Shown in pieces: positions 1,041 to 57,880 of a DNA stretch of 64,000 bases; the stretch's first letter is position 1, and every line of letters starts with the position of its first letter. The translations under genes were made by a program, and so were the position numbers. Origin of the DNA: Histomonas meleagridis 2922-C6/04-290x. Lineage: Eukaryota > Protista > Parabasalia. The stretch is from the NCBI GenBank assembly GCA_020184695.1, contig JAANOX010000245.1, positions 248,001-312,000 on the forward strand, in the 5' to 3' direction. The notes beneath the pieces are model-generated. The model was not told the origin of the DNA. It worked only from the letters and a program-made list of their open reading frames with translations, and did not search any database.

Positions 1041-3060
1041 TTATAAAATATCTTTAGCATTAATATCAATTCCTTCTTGTTCAAGAAGTAATTTAACTAT
1101 TTCTGTATGACCATCTCTAGATGCTAAAATAAGTGCTGTATTAAATAATTTAAATAAATTCCAAATATTATTTTGAAATATCAAATTATTAAAATAAATA
1201 TCAAATAAAACAAATAAATATCTTTAGCATTAATATTAATTCCTTCTTGTTCAAGAAGTAATTGAACTATTTCTGTATTATCATTCCAAGATGCATTAAT
1301 AAGTGCTGTTCCAAATAATTTAAATAATTTTCAAATATTACTTTGAAATAACAAACTATTAAAATAAATTATAAATAAAACAAATAAATATCTTTAGCAT
1401 TAATATCAATTCCTTCTTGTTCAAGAAGTAATTTAACTATTTCTGTATGACCTTTTGAAGATGCTATCATAAATGCTGTTTTAAATAATATAAATAATTT
1501 CCAAATATTATTTTGAATTTCCAAATTATTAAAATAAATATCAAATAAAACAAATAAATATCTTTAGCATTAATATTAATTCCTTCTTGTTCAAGAAGTA
1601 ATTGAACTATTTCTGTATTATCATTCCAAGATGCATTAATAAGTGCTGTTCCAAATAATTTAAATAATTTTCAAATATTACTTTGAAATAACAAACTATT
1701 AAAATAAATTATAAATAAAACAAATAAATATCTTTAGCATTAATATCAATTCCTTCTTGTTCAAGAAGTAATTTAACTATTTCTGTATGACCTTTTGAAG
1801 ATGCTAACATAAGTGCTGTATAAAATATTTTAAATAATTTCCAAATATTATTTTGAAATATTAAATTATTAAAATAAATATCAAATATAACAAATAAATA
1901 TCTTTAACATTAATATCAATTCCTTCTTGTTTTAAATCGTATTCAACAAGTTCAATATTTCTTGATCCTGCTGAAAATACCAATATATCATGCGGAATTG
2001 AATGCTCTTTAAGAAAATATTCAACTAAAAAAATATTTCCAATCATTGCTGCTTCATTAATAATATCATTATTGATTTCCATTCCTTCTTTAAGTAAAAA
2101 TGAGAATATTTCGGAGTTATGATATAAAATACAAAGATTTCCTAATTTTTCTAAATTATTAATTTCTTTTAATTTATTATCATAAAAATATTTAAAAATA
2201 TCATTACGATGAAATTCAATTGCAGTTTCATATGCATTATCAAATGATGAATGATTTTGTTCACATAAATGAATGATTTCAAGGTTTCCGCCTGCAATTG
2301 CATATTTACCTGTATTTTTTAAATTTGCACCATTCATAAGTAAATATTTAAAACATTTAACTGAAGAAAAAAATGCTGCATAATCAATTAATGAAACATA
2401 ATCTTCATCAATGAATGAACATATTTCATAGAGTGATGGTTTAATTTTTTGATTAAAATCAAAATTTGTTTGCGATGATATTTCTTGAAGTTTTTCTATT
2501 TCATCATTTCGAATTATTTTTGATATTTCATTTGGATTATGTCCTTCTCTAATTAATTTCTTATGTAATTCCCAATCATTCTTTGAAAGTTCTTCATAAT
2601 TTACAAAATCATGTTCCCTTAAATAGATTGTTAATTTATCTTTAGACATATAATGTACAAAATAAGCACTCTGATTGTTTTTTACAATATTTGGTTCAAG
2701 AAAATTATGTTCAATCATAGCTTCAAGAAGATAAGATGATTCATCTGTATTTTTATTATTAAGAAATTGCCCAAATATATCAAATATATTGGATTTGATT
2801 TTATTACTCTCTTCAAATGCTCTTATTTCTTTTGTAATATTCAAAAATATATTTGCATTATTATTTTTAATTACAAAGGAATAATATATCATTTGAAGAA
2901 TAATTAAATCATAAGATAAAGGATGGATTTCATCAAAATTATTGATTATTAAACCTAAAGTTTTAGTGAAATTTTCATCATTCAAACCAAAAATTGCTTG
3001 ATTTATTGATAGAAGTGTTTCCCAGTTACAATTTTTTGGATTCATATTTAACAAATTCAT
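1041..3060 (-). CDS. DUF3447/ankyrin-repeat protein (gene A), interrupted by 20 non-canonical 17-nt segments; about 559 aa after removal
   Basis: The ORF to 1900 has the trichomonad DUF3447-type block (LIDYAAFFSSVKCFKYLL...AIAGGNLEIIHLC...AIEFHRNDIF). Five 90-nt ankyrin exons start at 1819, 1649, 1479, 1309 and 1139. The 80-nt junctions parse as 4x(17+3) and give linkers D-DNGY, D-IVEG, D-DGGK, D-IVEG and D-DDGN before TAL/TAF. The gene ends D-I-L-TAA at 1041. The start is placed at ATG 3060 by length comparison with the paralogues; the ORF-track start at 3273 is probably an upstream extension. Confidence 0.75.
1050..1902 (-). repeat. 170-nt tandem ankyrin units with a 340-nt higher-order duplication
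   Basis: ACAGCA unit starts are exactly 170 nt apart. The units at 1649 and 1309, with their preceding junctions, appear identical. Confidence 0.95.
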
Positions 3061-3985
3061 TAGAGACCGTTTTTCCATGATCGGTTGTTCCCTCTCAATC
3101 GTCGGAGGACGCTTACTGCTTGCCAACAACAAGAACGATACAGTAAACTTTTCTAATTGCTTGTCAACTAATGAATAAGTAAAGTTTCGATTTCCATATC
3201 CTGTCCGTATGACTGGATTTAGTGTACAACTACCATATCTTTCATTCCTTTGCATGGAAAGTAAAAACATCATATGATGAAGGCTGTGATCCCACCACGA
3301 AATATTTCGAACAAAGAATGATCAATCACTTAATAGCGAAGATAAGAAACTTGATGTTACCTTGATAAAGTCGTTGCTACGAATAAAGTCAAGATAAAAA
3401 AATGTTATAATTTGTCCAAAACTAAATTTGTTCGTATTCAGATCTTTGAACTATTTTCGAACCAACCAATGTTTATTGGAGGCGCTTTCGTAAAATGGTT
3501 CAAAAAGCAAATGATGATCCACATCGAGCTGATGTTTACAATACTTCATCCAATTTCGATAAACGTCGCTTTCATAATCTATCTCCCACACATTCTCTTT
3601 GTACACTGTGTTGACTCATTGTGGTTCCAACGCGAACTCACAAAAGGAAAAGCTGCTGTCCAAGGCTACAGGTTACAATTTCTCATCATATTTCCTATAA
3701 TATAATTATGGAATGCTTTCCTTTTTAATCGATAAAGATAATAAAAATATAGAGGAACTTATTTCATCTATTAAGACGGGGAATGTGTTTTTGTTTAAAT
3801 ATTTTATAAAAAATAATACAGATTAAATGTTTTAAGTTTGATTTTAAATTCAAGAAATAAAGAACTTTTTAAATATATTTATATTGATTATAAGTAATGA
3901 TGATAATTCATTAATTTATATTTAGTTTTATATCAATAATTTGTTGCTGTTTTATTTAATTATTTTATTTCCAAATTATAAATAA

Positions 3986-12658: not shown

Positions 12659-15600
12659 ATGTCTCAAGAAGATGAAAGGAAGCCTCTAATAGGACTTAAG
12701 GCTTCGTTAACATTTTTTGAAAGTTCCTCAACAGACGAAGATGTATTTGGAGACGATGATGCATCAGGAAGTCAAACATGTACATTATCACTTCGACCTT
12801 GTTTAATTGAAACTCCAAAAACATTATCACCAAAGCAAAGTAAACAAAATCCTAATGAAATTACATCATTTGACGAAGCTTTACCAAAAATAACTACTTT
12901 ATTATCAAATCTTCAAGATTATACTATACCAAAACCTTTTACTGGAGAGATGGATTTTGTTCCTGAACATGTAACATCTAAATCATTAGCAAGAAAACTA
13001 CTTTCATTTATTAAGAAAACTAAGCCAGACATTAATTTTCGAAGTGAAAATCCTAATATTATAGCACAAATAAATATAGTTCGTTATTCACAAGGTGATA
13101 AAATTGATTTAAAAGAATTTGTTAATGAAAATTTAGATTCAAGAGTATTATCATTAATTTATTTCATACTTTCAAAAACAGATAATCAAAACAGATCATT
13201 ATATTATTCCATTGAGAGTGCCACAGAGTTTATTAAATCTCCAGATGTAGCACCAATATCTACATTATTTCCAGATTTTAATTTCATTACAATTATCCAT
13301 AAAATTGCAGTAAATCTTATAGGTTTATTTCCACATAATCCTATATTAGAATCCGTCATCAATAAGTTATCTAAATATGATTCTAGTGCTCGAGATTTAT
13401 TTAATTTAATATCAGATTCAGATGATGACGATGATTTTGATTTTGATTCATCATCCTTTTTTGAATCCATTCAAGAAATGCAACAACGTCCACCGCCATT
13501 ATTATTCCAATTAATTGGCGAAAATATTACGAATCCATTAGAAATAGGTCAACAATCAGTTTCAACATTATTTACTGTAACAGTCACAGAGCCACCATAT
13601 ACTATTTCATATTTACTTAGTGATGGTTCATATCAGATGACACCAAATCAATTTTTAGATTGGATATCGCAATTATATGACACATCAAAGAACGATAAAG
13701 CGTCAAAACACCGATCGACCAAAATTGACAGAGGTCTGTTCAGAAACATCGTTCATAGTTTATCATTTATTCAAGGGACAGAAACTGATGAACCATCATC
13801 TAGTTCATTAGCAGAAGTAACATCTGAGACGTTAATTTCATTATTTCGATATTCTCAAGAAGCTAATCAAATCATCTCATTATTACCACAATCATTACCA
13901 AGTGAATTATTTCCGATATATTATCCATTATTTCAAATTGTTAATCTTACCACATTAAAGCCGTATAAGAAAGGTTTTTTATATCCACAAATCATTGAAA
14001 ATGAATTTGAAGCACATCATTCATTAAAGAATTCTGATTCAAATCGATTACAAAAATGTATTAATAAAATGCTTGAAAACATTAATATCAACAAAATCAA
14101 GACCAAAGAAATTATACCTTTAACAAAGAAACGGATTTTTTCATCTGATGAAAAATGGGACCAAAATATTATTGAAGCATTAACATTATCAGACATCTTA
14201 ATTATAAATTATGGTCGCTCCCCATTAACATATGAAGTGTTTAACACCCAAATAATCATAAAATTACCATTTAATATTCAAACGTTAAAAGAAACAATTT
14301 ATTATCTCTATACGAAACATATTTATCCACCATATATATTATTTCGATTATCATTTTCATTAGCGTTAAGTTTACTTGAATTTAATCCACGACTTTCATG
14401 TGGTTTTTTATTTGAAGGATTATATATCTTAAATCAATATATCCCTGAGATATGTCAAGGCGAATTTTGTCGAAGTTCATTTTTATTATTTGCGGAGACA
14501 TTAGAGAAGATTGATTGTTATTATTATTCATCATTATTATTTGATATTTATTTCATTAGTAATCCAGATGACATAAAATTTAGTAATTCGATCGCACAAA
14601 TATGTCAAAGACATCGTGACATGACACGCGCAGTATTTCATTATACGCAATCGATGAAATCATTTGTATATAATGATAAATATGATGAAGCATTATATAT
14701 TTCACATTTGATTACAAACATTTATGATGAATATTCATTGTTCTTAAGTTCAATTAGTTTATTATCATTTTTATTACAACGTTCATATAAAATACCAATT
14801 TCAAGAAAGATCGAAATGAATAATGATAATAAATTACAAAATAGAACTTTACCGGTAATTAAGAATGATATTAAAGTTTGTAATTTTGAACCTCAATCTT
14901 CATCGATTAATACAATGTTAACAGCAATTTATTTAGTCGATTTATTTATTAAGAAACATTACTTTAAATTAGCAAATTCTTTATTAAAGAACTTAAAGTT
15001 ATCGACAAATAATTTAACATTTATTAAAATCATTGAATATTCAATATCGAAACGTTATTATTATAAAAATAAAATTAATAAATTTTTCATGTCATTACCA
15101 TTAATCGAAATTAAACAAAGGAAAAATATAATAAATTCGAAAGTGTCAATGTTAACAGCTTCAAATTTTGATACTTCAATTGCTACAATTAAATTATTAA
15201 TTAATATCTTTAATTCATATGAAGCATTTCGACATTCGTTATATTTCTCGGAATATTTAATACAATGCATTTCCAAAATCCATTTAAAAGATATTGGGTA
15301 TGCATTGTTATATCGAAGTAAGTCATTAGAAATTGGATACAATCGAATTTACTCAATAACATTTCCATTTTCATGGCATATTAAAAGTATTCCATTTATG
15401 AATTTTATACCGAATTATAAGAACAAAATTATATTTAATACATCAAATGATTACATATCAGAACTTTTATCAACATTAAAAATTACAATTGATACATTTG
15501 ATAAAGTCGGATATTTACATAAAACTATTGAAGCGACATTAATGTATTTGAATGTGTTAATGCATTATTTCATTGATCCTTTATATTTAATTGATGAAAA

Positions 15601-21464: not shown

Positions 21465-22034
21465 TTATGCATTAAATTCGTTTGATGGGTACATTTCAAA
21501 TGGATATTTCCCATCAGAATTTTTTTGTGATTTTGTGGAACAATCTGTATTAGTTTCAAGCCAATTAACAAGATCTTTTCGGTTTTCATAACATGCCAAG
21601 TGGATCGGTAGATTTCCTTCATTATCCGTATAATCAAAAGGTGCATCATTTTCCTTTAACATTTGTAATAATTCAATTGAACATTTTGGATTGCATATAG
21701 CTCTATGAATTGGTGTTGATCCAACAATATCTTTTTTCCAACTTACTATTCCATTTTGAAGAAACAAATCAATGACTTGAGTGTGACATTTTGATACAGC
21801 ATAAAAAAATGCATTCCGTTTTTCCTTTGTTTCTAAATTAGCCTTTGCCCCAGCTTGAAGAAGAGCATCTGCAATTTGAGCAAAACCAGCTGAAGCAGCT
21901 GTGATCAAAGGAGTCCAACCATTTTCATCTGCTTGATTCACATCATCACCCATCGCAATTCGTTCATTTACTTCTTTGAGATCTCCTTTCATTACAGCCC
22001 AATGTAAAGGTGTTCTTTCGTCTGTTTCTCCCAT
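21465..22034 (-). CDS. Ankyrin-repeat protein, gankyrin/Nas6-like; uninterrupted
   Basis: TPLHWA, DENGWTPLITAA, DIVGSTPIHRA and DNEGNLPIHLA are all in one contiguous ORF with no 17-nt inserts. Confidence 0.8.
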   Translation of the reverse strand: MGETDERTPLHWAVMKGDLKEVNERIAMGDDVNQADENGWTPLITAASAGFAQIADALLQAGAKANLETKEKRNAFFYAVSKCHTQVIDLFLQNGIVSWKKDIVGSTPIHRAICNPKCSIELLQMLKENDAPFDYTDNEGNLPIHLACYENRKDLVNWLETNTDCSTKSQKNSDGKYPFEMYPSNEFNA

Positions 22035-22131
22035 TTTTAAAATATTAATTTAAAATTGGTCGGAGAAATGTGATGTGAAATTATGATGAAATGTGTAAAA
22101 AAAAAATTCATTTTTATCGATATAATGAAAG

Positions 22132-22810: not shown

Positions 22811-24950
22811 TTACTTCTTATTTAACTTTTGCTTTAATAAATCCACTATTTGTTGATTATCTGTAATTTCAAAATTTTCATCAATTTCAATTTCTTTTTG
22901 TTCAATAAGTAATTTAACAATATCTATGTATTTACCTTTACAGGCCTTATATAATGCTGAATGAATTTTTTTGAAGAAATCCCTTTAATTATTTTAAAAC
23001 TTCAAATAAAACATGTGAATACATAACAATATCAAAAAACATTTTTAGCGTTTATATCTATTCCTTCTTTTTGAAGAAGTAATTGAACAACTTCTTTTTT
23101 ACCATTTCGTGCTGCGAGTATTAAAGCAGTATTAAATTAATTAAATAAATTCCAAAAAGTTATCAAAATAAACTTGAATATAAATTAACAAATGTTTTTT
23201 GCATTTATATCGATTTTTTCTTGATTAAGAAGAATTTTTACTATATCAACATGACCATATTGTGCTGCGACCATCAAAGGAGAATGAATTTGACTTAACA
23301 AACACCAAATTAAAAATCAAAATATGAAATATAAAAAATAATCATTATGAATAATAATATTAATATTTGAAAGATTAATATCAGTTCCTGGCTTTTGAAC
23401 AAGTGATAAAACAATATCTAAATTCCTATTTTTACATGAATGCATTAATGGAGTCCAAAATAATTTAAATAAATTCCAAATGATATATATTAACCCAAAA
23501 TAATTTTAAAATACATTATATAAAACATAAAAAACATCTCTTACGTTTACATCAATGTTATCTTGTTCAAGAAGAAATTTGACAAGTTCTGTGTGACTTT
23601 TTTCACATGCAAACATAAGTGCTGTTTGAAACTATTTAAAGAAATTCTTAAAAATGAGAATTTGACGCAAAAATACTTATAAAAAAATATCTTTTGAATT
23701 TATTTCAATGCAATTTTCTAAAAGGAATTTAACAATTTCTACTTTACCATATTTTGATGCAGCTACGAATATTTTCCAAACATAAAAAAATCTAAAAAAA
23801 TATTTTCAAAATCTAAATCATTTTCTTCTTTCTTTAGAATTGGCTCAATAATTTTTACGTTTTCCATCCTTTCATACCCTAAAAAATGCTTTATAAGGAA
23901 AATATTTCCAACCATTGCTGATTTTTCAAGAATGAAATCATTTATTTCTATTCCTTCTTCTTCTAAAAACAAGAAAATGGAAAAATCACAATATTCGATA
24001 CAACTCATTAATAAATCTGTATAATCTTCAATTTTAATGATTTTGTTTTCATAAATATAATGAAAGATATCATTTCGATGATATTCAATAGAGACTTCAT
24101 ATGCTTTTTCAAATGCTGCCTGATTTTGTATACATAAATGAAATATTTCGAGATTGCCGCCTGCAATTGCAAATTTTCCTGTGTTTTTGATGTTTGAGCC
24201 GTTCATTAACAAAAACTTAAAACATTTAACTGCAGAAAAAAATGCTGCATAATCAATTAACGAAACATTGTTTTTGTTAACAAATGTATATCTTTCATAA
24301 AGTGATGGTGCAATTGTTTGGTTAAAATTAAAATTTGTTTGTGCAGATATTTTTTGAAGTTTCTCGATTTCATCATTTCGAATTATTTTCGCAAGTTCAT
24401 TTGGATTAACTCCTTCTTTAATTAATTTCTTATGAAGTTCCCAATCATTCTTTGATAGCTCTTCAAAATTAGAATTAAAATCTTTACTAAATTTAATGAG
24501 TTTTAAATTTTCAATTTGTTTTTTGGGATTTAAATGAGAAAAATATAATGTTCTTTTAGTTTTAATGAAACTTGTATCAATTAATTCTTTCTCAAGCATT
24601 TTTTCAAGTAAATAATTTGATTCATCTGAATTTAAGTTATGAATATATTTGCAAAAATTTCCAAATAATTTTGTATTACTTTTTAGAACTTCTTCTTCTT
24701 TCATATCAATAGCTATTAAAAAATTAAAATATATATTCGGATCTCCCATTCGAGAAACAAAAGAAGAATATATCATCCTAATTAATAACAAATTAAATGA
24801 TAATGGAAAATTTATATCAAAAAAATCCATTGTTGCTTGAACTGATGCTGTAATTGTATTCAGATTTAAATTGATTATTATTTCCTCTAATTTTTGTAAG
24901 ATATGGAGATAAGGCTTAGGACGTAGAAAAAAATTTTCCAAAGCAGACAT
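22811..24950 (-). CDS. DUF3447/ankyrin-repeat protein (gene B), interrupted by 19 non-canonical 17/18-nt segments
   Basis: The DUF3447 ORF joins the ankyrin frame if the single 17-mer 23785-23801 is removed. Junctions 23688-23626, 23535-23455, 23364-23284, 23193-23131 and 23040-22961 give D-FLRQ-TAL (layout ambiguous), D-NWGW-TPL, N-NHGH-SPL, N-QFGN-TAL and N-CEGH-SAL. The last exon is open to TAA at 22811. The first ATG is at 24950. Confidence 0.75.
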
Positions 24951-27349: not shown

Positions 27350-29084
27350 GTAAAGTGATACACAAATTCAGTACAATAACACATATGTAAAGTGATACAC
27401 AAATTCAGTACACAAACACATATGTAAAGTGATGCACAAATTCAGTACACAAACACATATGTAAAGTGATACACAAATTCAGTACAATAACACATATGTA
27501 AAGTGATACACAAATTCAGTACAATAACACATATGTAAAGTGATACACAAATTCAGTACAATAACACATATATGTAAAGTGATACACAAATTCAGTACAA
27601 TAACACATATGTAAAGTGATGCACAAATTCAGTACAATAACACATATGTAAAGTGATACACAAATTCAGTACAATAACACATATGTAAAGTGATGCACAA
27701 ATTCAGTACACAAACACATATGTAAAGTGATGCACAAATTCAGTACAATAACACATATGTAAAGTGATACACAAATTCAGTACACAAACACATATGTAAA
27801 GTGATACACAAATTCAGTACAATAACACATATGTAAAGTGATACACAAATTCAGTACAATAACACATATGTAAAGTGATACACAAATTCAGTACAATAAC
27901 ACATATGTAAAGTGATGCACAAATTCAGTACAATAACACATATGTAAAGTGATACACAAATTCAGTACAATAACACATATGTAAAGTGATACACAAATTC
28001 AGTACAATAACACATATGTAAAGTGATACACAAATTCAGTACAATAACACATATGTAAAGTGATGCACAAATTCAGTACAATAACACATATGTAAAGTGA
28101 TGCACAAATTCAGTACACAAACACATATGTAAAGTGATACACAAATTCAGTACAATAACACATATGTAAAGTGATACACAAATTCAGTACAATAACACAT
28201 ATGTAAAGTGATACACAAATTCAGTACAATAACACATATGTAAAGTGATACACAAATTCAGTACACAAACACATATGTAAAGTGATACACAAATTCAGTA
28301 CACAAACACATATGTAAAGTGATACACAAATTCAGTACACAAACACATATGTAAAGTGATACACAAATTCAGTACAATAACACATATAAAGTGATACACA
28401 AATTCAGTACAATAACACATATGTAAAGTGATACACAAATTCAGTACAATAACACATATGTAAAGTGATACACAAATTCAGTACACAAACACATATGTAA
28501 AGTGATACACAAATTCAGTACAATAACACATATGTAAAGTGATACACAAATTCAGTACACAAACACATATGTAAAGTGATGCACAAATTCAGTACAATAA
28601 CACATATGTAAAGTGATACACAAATTCAGTACAATAACACATATGTAAAGTGATACACAAATTCAGTACAATAACACATATGTAAAGTGATACACAAATT
28701 CAGTACAATAACACATATGTAAAGTGATGCACAAATTCAGTACAATAACACATATGTAAAGTGATACACAAATTCAGTACAATAACACATATGTAAAGTG
28801 ATACACAAATTCAGTACAATAACACATATGTAAAGTGATGCACAAATTCAGTACACAAACACATATGTAAAGTGATACACAAATTCAGTACAATAACACA
28901 TATGTAAAGTGATACACAAATTCAGTACAATAACACATATGTAAAGTGATGCACAAATTCAGTACACAAACACATATGTAAAGTGATGCACAAATTCAGT
29001 ACAATAACACATATGTAAAGTGATACACAAATTCAGTACAATAACACATATGTAAAGTGATGCACAAATTCAGTACACAAACAC
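27350..29084. repeat. 37-nt tandem satellite (GTAAAGTGAT(A/G)CACAAATTCAGTACA(AT/CA)AACACATAT), about 47 copies
   Basis: Head-to-tail units with no spacers and two biallelic positions. One unit has 2 extra nt (near 27570) and one lacks 2 nt (near 28387). Stop codons interrupt reading on both strands. Confidence 0.97.
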
Positions 29085-54138: not shown

Positions 54139-57100
54139 ATGGGAAATAGTCAAACGCAAATCAAAGAAGAAAATATAGATCCGATAGGAATGTTACAACA
54201 AATAGAAAATTATATCTTTAAAATGAACGAAAATAATATTCCAGAAACAGTTGAATCAACATTATTTATTAAAACTCGCCAATATCCATATTCATTTAAG
54301 CTTATAATTTGTCAATTACTTTATTCGTATTTTTTAATGGGAAATGAAAATATTCAATTAATTTTCGAATATATAAAATTATTTAAAATGAAAGAAGAAG
54401 AATTATATAATCAAAAAAAAGATACAAATAATGAAACGAAAGAAGATAATATCATTAATATTTTTACAGATTTTCTTTTTAATAATAAAACACAAGAATC
54501 GAATTATATTCTCGAAAGATTAACTGAAAATAAAATAATTGAAGAAAATAAGATCAGATATATAAACTCATTGTTATTTATTCATTATAAAAGAAAAAAC
54601 GAAATTAATGATATAAAGTCTGATTTTCTAAAATCAATTTTAGATAATTACAAAGAGCTTTCGAGGAATGATTTTGAACTTCATAAGCAATATGTTAAAG
54701 AAGGACATAATCCAAATGAAATAGCAAAAATAATTCGAAATGATGAAGTAGAAAAACTTCAAGAAATATCATCACAAACAAATTTTGATTTTAATCAAAA
54801 AATTAAACCATCACTTTATGAAATATGTTCATTTATAAATGAAGAAAATGTTTCATTAATTGATTATGCAGCATTTTTTGGATCAGTTAAATGTTTTAAA
54901 TATTTACTTATGAATGGTGCAAATGTAGAAAACGCAGGTAAATATGCAGTTGCAAGTGAGAATGAAGAAATTATTCATTTATGTGAACAAAATCATTCTT
55001 CATTTGAAGATGCATATGAAACAGCAATTATGTTTCATCGAAATGATATCTTTAAATACATTTATGAAAATAAATCAGAAAATATTATGCATACTGATTT
55101 ATTAATTGAATGTGTTTTTTATTCTAATTATGAAATACTTTCATTACTAATCGATAAAGAAAATAAAAATTTTTATGAACTTATCAAAACTTCGATTAAA
55201 ACTGGAAATATATTTTTATTTAAATATTTTGTAAATAATAATATAGATAAAATCCCTAAAAATGTTTTAAGTTTTATTTTAATTTCAAGAAATAAAGAAC
55301 TTTTTAAAGATATTCTTAAAAATAAATTTATATTGATTAAAAGTAATGATGATATTTAATTAATTTATATATAGTTTTATATTAATAATTTAATGTATCA
55401 AAAATTTAATTAACGTTTTATTTAATTATTTTATTTACAAATTATAAATAATTTTAATTTTAGTTCTACAGAAATGTATAAGTTCTTATTTAAGCAAAAT
55501 ACAATCGAAATTAATGCTAAAGATATTTCTAAATTTTATATAATATTGATATTAATAATTTTATATTTCAAAATAATATTTGGAAATTATTTAAATTATT
55601 TTATACAGCACTTATGGTAGCATCTTCAAAAGGTTATACTAAGATAGTTAAATTACTTCTTGAACAAGAAGGAATTGATATTAATGCTAAAGGTATTTAT
55701 TTGTTTTATTTGATATTTATTTTAATATTTTTATATTTCAATATAATATTTGGAAATTATTTAAAATATTTAATACAGCACTTATATTTGCATCTGCAAA
55801 TGGTAATACAGAAATAGTTAAATTACTTCTTGAAAAAGAAGGAATTGATATTAATGCTAAAAATATTTATTTGTTTTATTTGATATTTATTTTAATATTT
55901 TTATATTTCAATATAATATTTGGAAATTATTTAAAATATTTAATACAGCACTTATGAAAGCATCTTTTAATGGTCATATAGAAATAGTTCAATTACTTCT
56001 TGAAAAAGAAGGAATTGATATTAATGCTAAAAATATTTATTTGTTTTATTTGATATTTATTTTAATAATTTGATATAATAAAATAATATTTGGAAATTAT
56101 TTAAATTATTTAATACGGCACTTATATTTGCATCTGAATATGACTATACAGAAATAGTTAAATTACTTCTTGAACAAGAAGGAATTAATATTAATGCTAA
56201 AGATATTTATTTGTTTTATTTAATATTTATTTTAATAATTTTCTATTTCAAAATAATATTTGGAAATTATTTAAATTATTTTATACAGCACTTATGGTAG
56301 CATCTTCAAAAGGTTATACTAAGATAGTTAAATTACTTCTTGAACAAGAAGGAATTGATATTAATGCTAAAAATATTTATTTGTTTTATTTGATATTTAT
56401 TTTAATATTTTTATATTTCAATATAATATTTGGAAATTATTTAAATTATTTAATACAGCTCTTATGAAAGCATCTGAAAAAGGTTATATAGATATAGTAA
56501 AATTACTTTTTGAACAAGAAGGAATTGATATTAATGCTAAAAATCCTTGTTTATGTTATTTATTTTTTATTTAAATAATTAGGAATTTCAAAATAATATT
56601 TGGAAATTATATTAAATAATTAGAACAGCACTTATATATGCTTCTACATACCATAAAACAGAAATAGTTAAATTACTACTTGAACAAGAAGGAATTGATC
56701 TTAATGCTAAATGTATTTATTCTTTTTGTTTAGAATTTATAATGACATTTTGATATTTCAAAGCAATATTTGGAAATTATTTAAATTATATACAGCACTT
56801 GTAATAGCATCTTATTATGATTATACTGACATAGTTAAATTACTACTTAAACAAGAAGGAATTGATATTAATATTAGAGATATATATTTGTTTTATTTAA
56901 TCTTTATTTTAATAATTTTTTATTTCAAAATAATGTTTGGAATTTATTAAAAATATTTAAAACAGCACTTATGTATGCAACTATAAATGGTTATATAGAA
57001 ACATTTAAATTACTTCTTGAACAAGAAGGAATTGATATTAATATTAAAAATATCCAATTACTAAATAAATTATTTCTTATATAATTTTGATATAGTTTCA

Positions 57101-57880
57101 TTAAATTTGGAATTAAATTTCAATAATTGAAACATCACTTACATTGGCTTCAAAAAATGGACATATAGAAATAGTTAAATTACTTCTTGAACAAAATGGA
57201 ATTGATATTAATCCTCAAGATATTAAATTGAATAATAACGAATATCAAAAAATATTTTTATGATTTTATTAAATATTATATGAATAAATTATATAATCAA
57301 AACACCACTTATATGGGCATCAGAGAGAGGTTTTATAGAAATAGTTAAAGTTTTACTTAAACAAAAAAGAATTAATATTAACATGAAAGATATTTCAATA
57401 CATCAAGTAATGACTTAATTAATCATTTTGTAATTGAAAATAATATTTGGAGATTATTTATATTTTATAATACAGCACTAATTTGGGCATCTATTAATGG
57501 AAATGTAAAAATAGTTAAAATATTACTTAAACAAAAAAACATTGATATTAATGCTAAAAATTTATATATTTTTCAAATAATATTTATATAAATTATTTTG
57601 GATTTCGCTATAATATTTGGAATTTATTTATATTTACTAAAACAGCACTTATAAAAGCCATTGAAAATGCAAGAATAAAAGTTATTAAATTACTATTAAA
57701 AAAAGATAATCTTGATATAAATATAAGTGATATTAAAATATTTCATTTTTATTTGCTCTTAAATAATTAAAATCATATAATTTAATTTGGAATTTATTAC
57801 GCTTAAATGAAACAATTTTCACACATGCATTAAAAAAGGGTAATAATGAAATCATAAATTTACTAGAAAAATATAAATAA
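54139..57880 (+). CDS. DUF3447/ankyrin-repeat protein (gene C), interrupted by 60 non-canonical 17/18-nt segments; about 906 aa after removal
   Basis: The DUF3447 ORF runs to 55353. Fourteen stop-free 90-nt exons start at 55435, 55605, ... 57642 (period 170 nt, once 167). A final 22-codon exon starts at 57812 and ends at TAA 57878-57880. All 15 junctions parse as 4x(17+3), with one 18-mer and one missing codon. Confidence 0.8.

Follow-up and report, generated by a model that had tools for sequence, protein, structure and literature searches.

The window analysed here is a 64,000-nucleotide (nt) stretch of the genome of Histomonas meleagridis 2922-C6/04-290x (GenBank assembly GCA_020184695.1, contig JAANOX010000245.1, contig 245 in our numbering, positions 248001-312000), and the searches described below covered the whole assembly of 43,133,364 bp in 281 contigs. 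The window holds genes of a DUF3447-ankyrin family, here called gene A and gene B, whose coding sequence is broken at regular intervals by clusters of very short inserts, nearly always 17 nt long, with single codons standing between them. Such a cluster is called a junction, and its four insert positions are called slots 1 to 4. An open reading frame (ORF) of 406 codons at 54139-55356 covers the first exon of gene A and terminates at a stop codon within the first insert. The features of gene A, numbered from the first letter of the window, are as follows.

54139-55353, forward strand: first exon of gene A, the DUF3447/ankyrin N-terminal part, an open frame with Pfam matches to DUF3447 and Ank; its final loop codon is GAT at 55351-55353
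55354-55370, forward strand: insert 1, 17 nt, begins ATTT and ends AT; the same length in five paralogues
55371-55373, forward strand: single-codon exon ATA (Ile); TTA in two paralogues
55374-55391, forward strand: insert 2, 18 nt, begins GTTT and ends TTT; one 18-mer is needed for the frame in all six paralogues
55392-55394, forward strand: single-codon exon AAT (Asn); AGT in two paralogues
55395-55411, forward strand: insert 3, 17 nt, begins GT; absent from one paralogue (L006)
55412-55414, forward strand: single-codon exon AAC (Asn); GCC in two paralogues
55415-55431, forward strand: insert 4, 17 nt, begins GTTT (ATTT in L006) and ends ATTT
55432-55524, forward strand: next exon, a degenerate ankyrin repeat body with the first loop codon of the following junction
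55525-57808, forward strand: fourteen more junctions; the stop codon of gene A is at 57878-57880
55522, 55692, 55862, 56032, 56202, 56372 and 56542, forward strand: starts of junction blocks
56709/56712, 56879, 57049, 57219, 57389 and 57559, forward strand: starts of further junction blocks, the last block being 57729-57808

Downstream of its first junction gene A has a period of 170 nt (once 167 nt), which is the sum of a 90-nt repeat body and an 80-nt junction. On this period 11 of 13 blocks parse as four units of one codon plus 17 nt and give a loop, for example D-N-Y-G, between ...I-N-A-K and x-T-A-L. Two blocks, 56709/56712 (the 167-nt period) and 57219, deviate from the fixed register; block 56712 was read by hand, the automatic parse having set its fourth insert over the Gly codon. 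What the 30-residue repeat body is missing, relative to the 33-residue consensus of the Pfam ankyrin family, is precisely the four-residue hairpin D-x-x-G. Once the inserts are removed, the sequence reads as the ankyrin hairpin, with loops of the form D/N-x-x-G and x-T-A-L after them.

Direct reading of the first junction agreed with the coordinates and the three GT starts (55374, 55395 and 55415) listed in the initial annotation. One correction applies: the second insert is an 18-mer, and for this reason the spacings are 21 and 20 nt. Five genomic paralogues of this junction were found, four of which retain the 81-nt length including the 18-mer. In two other paralogues the single codons carry non-synonymous changes and all lengths are unchanged. 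The paralogue L006, otherwise nearly identical to the window, is without exactly the 17 nt of insert 3 (within sliding of the boundaries), and its AAT and AAC codons are adjacent; its fourth insert has A at the start where the window has G. L006 is in frame only if each remaining insert is removed singly. A 7-nt direct repeat flanks insert 3, and the loss in L006 could therefore be explained by replication slippage.

Three more ankyrin genes of the window bear on the distribution of the inserts.

22814-24950, reverse strand: gene B, a 395-residue N-terminal exon and, after it, six ankyrin repeat bodies with like junctions between them
23458-23535, reverse strand: junction of gene B, an 18-mer, AAT, a 17-mer, TGG, a 17-mer, GGA and a 17-mer; three of the four inserts start GT
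1041-3273, reverse strand: third gene of the family, a 470-residue N-terminal ORF with DUF3447 and ankyrin matches followed by junctions of the same type, pooled in the statistics
21468-22049, reverse strand: conventional ankyrin gene with uninterrupted repeats in a 194-residue open frame and no inserts

The junction of gene B has the three GT starts that had been noted for it, and its layout, an 18-mer and then three 17-mers, is like that of the first junction of gene A. Because the gene at 21468-22049 has no inserts, the 17-nt inserts appear specific to the DUF3447-ankyrin family and not common to ankyrin repeats generally. A scan of the window outside the ankyrin genes for lone 17-nt gaps joining two long ORFs gave chance matches at threshold level only. 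Elsewhere the window encodes ordinary eukaryotic proteins (BEACH, Rft1, eIF2A, BspA-type leucine-rich repeat) in long unbroken ORFs, the closest named proteins to its genes are those of H. meleagridis, and its G+C content ranges from 18 to 35%. At 27375-29051 (forward strand), where a motif scan gave near-matches at regular spacing, lies a tandem repeat with a period of 37 nt and about 46 copies; it coincides with a high AT skew at 26-30 kb.

The junctions were then described across the genome. The N-terminal domain gave about 10,000 first-look candidates, at least 100 of the scored copies being near 50% identity. The ankyrin side of 60 copies was taken, and repeat bodies were located with a profile built from gene A. 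Insert lengths were derived from junction totals, since a parser left free to choose 16, 17 or 18 nt gave spurious pairs of 16 and 18. Among 500 well-anchored junctions, 384 were 80 nt long, 38 were 63 nt, 22 were 83 nt and 14 were 81 nt; rarer lengths were 60 nt (8), 66 nt (5), 77 nt (4), 100 nt (4) and 82 nt (3). None of the 500 was 79 nt long and none was free of inserts (9-15 nt). A junction with four codons is extended to 81 nt by one 18-mer and would be shortened to 79 nt by one 16-mer. The insert length is thus 17 nt in about 99% of cases; 18-mers make up about 1%, their extra base being internal, and no insert is clearly 16 nt. This upholds the earlier description of a near-invariant length of 17, rarely 18. 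The length rule looks like a lower limit and not an exact ruler.

The other lengths follow from the gain and loss of whole parts. In junctions of 63 and 66 nt one insert is lost and both neighbouring codons are retained; slot 1, 2 or 3 can be absent in this way. Junctions of 60, 100 and 120 nt have lost or gained a whole unit of codon plus insert, those of 83 and 77 nt have one codon more or fewer, and those of 20, 23 and 46 nt keep just one or two inserts. With lengths shifting by 3, 17 and 20 nt, and with a paralogue that lacks exactly one insert, the inserts are independent units. The 100- and 120-nt junctions (L072, forward strand, 135-1000; L058, forward strand, 464-1600) consist of five or six near-identical 20-nt units; here tandem amplification of the unit of codon plus 17-mer has extended the loop to five or six residues.

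The family is large. An 18-base word spanning the third insert, GGA and the fourth insert occurred 2,062 times in the genome (0 for the reversed control) and was found in 13-16% of sampled junctions. Together with the quantised junction lengths, this count places the pattern well outside chance. From these numbers we extrapolate about 13,000-15,000 junctions and roughly 50,000 inserts genome-wide, figures that depend on a sample chosen by similarity.

The triplets between the inserts are translated. In 1,412 slots, from 353 distinct 80-nt junctions of the window and 71 family loci (the set used for all end statistics below), stop codons occurred once, where the column frequencies predict 35; in slot 3 by itself 1 was seen and 23.5 were expected. 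Triplets inside the inserts are stops in 7% of cases. Three of the four triplets are usually NAT. Per-site differences were computed over 490 pairs of repeats within genes. At exon codon positions 1, 2 and 3 they were 0.19, 0.125 and 0.207, and at loop codon positions 0.41, 0.29 and 0.21. The single loop codons are therefore the fastest-changing sites of the repeat unit, mostly at non-synonymous positions. The elements that flank them span 0.07-0.20 differences per site and are the most conserved part of the unit; insert positions 1-4, 5-13 and 14-17 differed by 0.097, 0.153 and 0.113. Since inserts differ less than the third codon positions of exons, their sequence must be under constraint, most of it at both ends. 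The earlier statement that length is far better conserved than sequence does not hold against these values (0.097-0.153 vs. 0.207). Loop codons that vary beside conserved inserts could suit diversification of the loop.

The inserts follow a consistent end rule. Position 1 is A in 78% and G in 17% (purine in 95%). Position 2 is T in 78% overall and in 92-96% of slots 1-3, whereas slot 4 has A in 67%. T also dominates positions 3 (89%) and 4 (86%), and position 5 is A in 61%. At the other end, position 14 is A in 83%, and positions 15, 16 and 17 are T in 91%, 88% and 90%, respectively. The base before the insert is T in 56% and A in 37%, slot 4 being preceded by A and not T; the base after it is G in 42% and A in 36%. 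The first dinucleotide is AT in 59%, AA in 18% (nearly all in slot 4), GT in 14% and TT in 4%. The last is TT in 80%, AT in 8%, TC in 4% and TA in 2%. The initial annotation had described segments with a purine-T(T) 5' end and a T-rich 3' end that never finish in AG. The first two parts stand, and "never" becomes 0.2% (3 of 1,412 inserts). About 3 AG ends are expected from the T preference at positions 16 and 17, so AG is not specifically avoided; TT is what is required.

The placement of the boundaries is often ambiguous, as had been anticipated for shifts of 1 nt. At least one base of shift leaves the product unaltered in 68% of inserts, and the other 32% are uniquely placed. The uniquely placed inserts start AT in 51%, AA in 29% and GT in 11%, and 79% of them end TT. 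When any equivalent register was allowed, 17 of 1,412 inserts could take on known terminal pairs (GT, GC or AT at the start, AG or AC at the end); sliding therefore does not restore GT...AG.

The GT starts had been taken as a hint of a donor-like signal. G occupies position 1 in 17%, 20%, 22% and 8% of slots 1 to 4, respectively. The G-starts cluster, with 21 junctions having three of them against 5 expected, and G-start inserts have interiors that depart strongly from the family consensus (mean score 2.4 vs. 6.2, p = 8e-27). The last base is independent of the first, being T in 91% of A-starts and 80% of G-starts, and G and A exchange at position 1 between close paralogues. The two GT-rich examples first noticed, in genes A and B, are 81-nt junctions of the diverged kind. 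G-starts thus mark diverged copies, which are probably older, and they are not a GT-AG subclass. The hint of a donor is accordingly weak, since G is the less frequent allele at a purine position and is accompanied by neither AG nor a branch motif.

Outside this genome, family proteins from ENA metagenomes are at most 60% identical to any copy in it. They either stop just after ...INAK-D or read through the junction, and give the same translated words as in Histomonas. Two of them imply junctions of 80 nt and 66 nt (the latter with three inserts and five codons), as deduced from the protein sequences. Judged from these proteins, a related species carries the same family with the same 80-nt junction layout. 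When metagenome contigs were scanned for exact 20-mers, 53 single matches resulted, none with family exons, and these are chance matches. The Tritrichomonas homologues are annotated with uninterrupted ankyrin arrays. Together with the insert-free gene of the window, this indicates that the system is a feature of a single gene family within the Histomonas lineage. In the public annotation of H. meleagridis this very large family has few members (P0015, P0016, P0018 and P0035), and those seen there end inside the first insert (P0016 and P0018) or before a junction. Word searches of the protein collection recovered neither gene A nor gene B.

The elements were compared with the established intron classes. 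U2-type ends in their parabasalid form are scarce, with GT at 14%, AG at 0.2% and both together in 2 of 1,412 inserts, and the elements do not fit the extended U2-type signals: of the 5' motifs, GYAYGY occurred in 0 and GTWYWD in 118 of 1,412 inserts, and of the branch/3' motif (RCTAACACAYAG or TCTAAC..AACAG), CTAA occurred in 25 and ACTAAC in 1. Genome-wide, the canonical parabasalid 3' motif is weakly enriched (35 vs. 20 in the control), which suggests that ordinary introns are few. For the U12 type, [AG]TATCC occurred in 0 of 1,412 inserts and AC ends in 9. What the elements do share with ultra-short introns is a narrow length at a hard lower limit.

It is probable, in our judgement, that the inserts are tiny non-canonical introns removed singly from RNA, with a derived spliceosome as the enzyme. 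Each 17-nt element (18 nt in about 1%) would then be a separate intervening sequence, taken out of the transcript on its own, and removal would join the single codons and the 30-codon repeat bodies into an ordinary ankyrin repeat of 33-34 residues. The elements would be defined by a purine-TTT 5' end, an ATTT 3' end and a minimum length of 17 nt. As the enzyme we take a strongly derived spliceosome to be more likely, one that would work at its lower size limit in the manner of the 15-17-nt introns of Stentor and Mikrocytos. Among the observations that count for this reading, 14 junctions were one base longer and none one base shorter, and the loose 5' motif of Trichomonas type-B introns is present as GTWYWD in 118 and as RTWYWD in 599 of 1,412 inserts. 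The genome has one Prp8 gene (PROCN domain, 687 bits, in an open frame of 2,333 residues) and a full-length U6 candidate scoring 43.7 bits against the Rfam cut-off of 44 (contig 14, 188532-188639, forward strand), which indicates that a spliceosome is present. Two RtcB genes are found beside the one Prp8 and the near-threshold U6; the machinery present does not discriminate between mechanisms.

Several observations weigh against a spliceosome. AG ends are just 0.2%, slot 4 mostly begins AA, and GYAYGY was found at the 5' end in 0 of 1,412 inserts. A branch motif is lacking, with CTAA in 25 and ACTAAC in 1 of 1,412. U1 was not detected in the genome with Rfam. The literature gave no precedent for 3-nt exons between 17-nt introns. 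The four slots are interrelated and have spread by duplication, and their end motifs consequently have few independent origins. No RNA-derived protein of H. meleagridis emerged from word searches that used the N-terminal exons of gene A, gene B and a single repeat-body ORF, nor from a full HMMER search; all family matches extending to a junction continued into the inserts, as genomic-type sequence does.

The same ends and length might instead reflect a dedicated endonuclease that cuts the elements from RNA, recognizing U-rich ends or a distance, with an RNA ligase such as RtcB joining the exons, a cut-and-ligate scheme like tRNA or HAC1/XBP1 splicing. It would account for ends that fit no spliceosomal class, for boundaries that usually both follow T (the preceding base in 56%, the last base in 90%), and for the near-fixed length, and two RtcB genes are at hand. 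A bulge-helix-bulge substrate was tried and rejected: the junction with its flanks folds at -13.1 kcal/mol against a shuffle mean of -11.5 (z-score -0.57), and no other stable fold was seen in the junction RNA. Moreover, the analysis yielded no candidate for the endonuclease, the base before slot 4 is A, and RtcB occurs in most eukaryotes anyway. We regard such an enzyme as possible but rather unlikely. If one must choose between the two, the spliceosome is more likely, with an endonuclease and ligase close behind. Taken together they make removal at the RNA level, by whichever enzyme, very probable; this level and the enzyme are what we infer, while the anatomy, the end and length rules, the reading of the codons and the precise gains and losses are shown by the sequences.

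The remaining explanations are much less likely. The elements could be retained in mRNA and hopped over by the ribosome, as in T4 gene 60 and the byps of Magnusiomyces mitochondria, and a fixed length and the lack of splice signals would suit this. The take-off codon, however, is the element's last triplet in only 20 of 1,733 cases, no stable structure was found, and gene A would need about 60 hops in a row; ribosome skipping, one of the options raised initially, is thus disfavoured and highly improbable. Just as improbable is a single intron of 77-80 nt in place of each junction, the "single codons" being part of a 20-nt tandem repeat within it. Four related 20-nt units, the three of four NAT triplets and the gain and loss of whole 20-nt units (60, 100 and 120 nt) speak for such an intron, but its triplets would have no reason to avoid stops (1 vs. 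35) or to spell the D-x-x-G loop that is missing from the 30-residue bodies. Its length should also be free, yet changes of 1 or 2 nt are rare, a change of -1 is absent, and steps of 17 and 3 are common; its outer ends, likewise, are not GT...AG. Excision from DNA in expressing cells, in the way of the internal eliminated sequences of ciliates, would agree with short, AT-rich elements of fixed size. DNA-level excision was also among the initial options; its TA-bounded form is disfavoured by the finding that only 199 of 1,412 elements (14%) can be written TA...TA, and at every one of the extrapolated 13,000-15,000 junctions the elements are present in the assembly, which comes from cultured cells. 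If there were no removal at all, the genes would be decaying pseudogenes, in keeping with the ends of the annotated P0016 and P0018 at the first element and with the absence of genes A and B from the protein collection. Their exon frames are open, though, position 2 changes less than position 3 (0.125 vs. 0.207), the loop triplets avoid stops and the insert length is held at 17. DNA excision and decay together are most unlikely. Overall, the observation in the initial annotation was confirmed with small corrections, and its interpretation was supported in part.

One-by-one removal from RNA would have consequences for the biology of the parasite. We tentatively propose a new class of nuclear intervening sequence of about 17 nt, defined by purine-UUU and AUUU ends and a length limit in place of GU...AG and a branch site, which holds binding-loop codons as single-codon exons. 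Such a class may keep the hypervariable residues of the ankyrin binding loop as single-codon exons between conserved handles. If so, codons might be skipped in frame when one element's start is paired with another's end, or codon-by-codon exchange among thousands of repeats could occur; by either route the parasite would diversify a very large family of binding proteins. If excision from RNA is correct, the known recognition rules (GU...AG or AU...AC, a branch site and a minimum exon size) would be incomplete for eukaryotic nuclei.

There are also practical consequences. The genome paper predicted 573-638 introns, at most one per gene (PMC8529796); if removal is as proposed, Histomonas would have tens of thousands of elements against these few hundred annotated canonical introns (PMC8529796). 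What may be hundreds of ankyrin genes are cut short in the public annotation or missing from it, and proteome, surfaceome and antigen studies of this poultry pathogen have accordingly searched a database without them. The measured rules can serve as parameters for gene finders, RNA-seq aligners and reporter tests: a purine at +1, T at +2 to +4, ATTT at -4 to -1, a length of 17 or 18 and never 16, and boundaries that are ambiguous by 1 nt in 68% of inserts.

Several known systems share single traits with these elements. Animals and plants have 3-nt microexons, in which, as in Histomonas, an exon may consist of one codon. Those microexons sit between long canonical introns and depend on exon-definition factors, whereas the single codons of Histomonas are packed between 17-nt elements. 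Translational bypassing, as in T4 gene 60 and the Magnusiomyces byps, concerns short non-coding gaps in an ORF without splice signals, and it requires take-off and landing codons that match, usually along with a structure. The Histomonas elements show neither the matched codons nor the structure. Nuclear introns of euglenids and diplonemids that lack GT...AG and are abundant in one lineage are longer and variable in length, and their ends are thought to pair. In Histomonas, the length is fixed and no pairing was seen. The introns that lack GT...AG and their abundance in one lineage are described in PMC12621601.

Closer in size are the shortest introns. Mikrocytos, Stentor and Bigelowiella have ultra-short introns that carry GT...AG ends and a branch adenosine. 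They are 16 nt and rarely 17 nt in Mikrocytos mackini (PMC10245619), 15-16 nt in Stentor coeruleus and 18-21 nt in the Bigelowiella nucleomorph, the last two as cited in PMC12316389. Like the Histomonas elements they are very short, narrow in length with a hard lower limit, AT-rich, conserved and present in many copies. They are spliceosomal and lie between normal exons; in Histomonas, unlike these introns, AG ends are at 0.2%, the first base is mostly A, there is no branch motif, and up to six elements stand in a row with 3-nt exons between them. In the same phylum, the type-B introns of Trichomonas vaginalis and T. stableri are 23-28 nt long, always GT/AG, and number tens per genome, with a fused branch/3' motif TCTAAC...AACAG and a loose 5' motif GTWYWD (PMC12316389). 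They too are short with a T-rich interior, and the G-start elements of Histomonas match GTWYWD; the Histomonas elements, however, lack the fused motif and number tens of thousands and not tens. Literature searches on Histomonas and Dientamoeba introns, 17-nt introns, parabasalid ankyrin introns and single-codon exons found no description of such a system. It matches none of the intron types that we found described.

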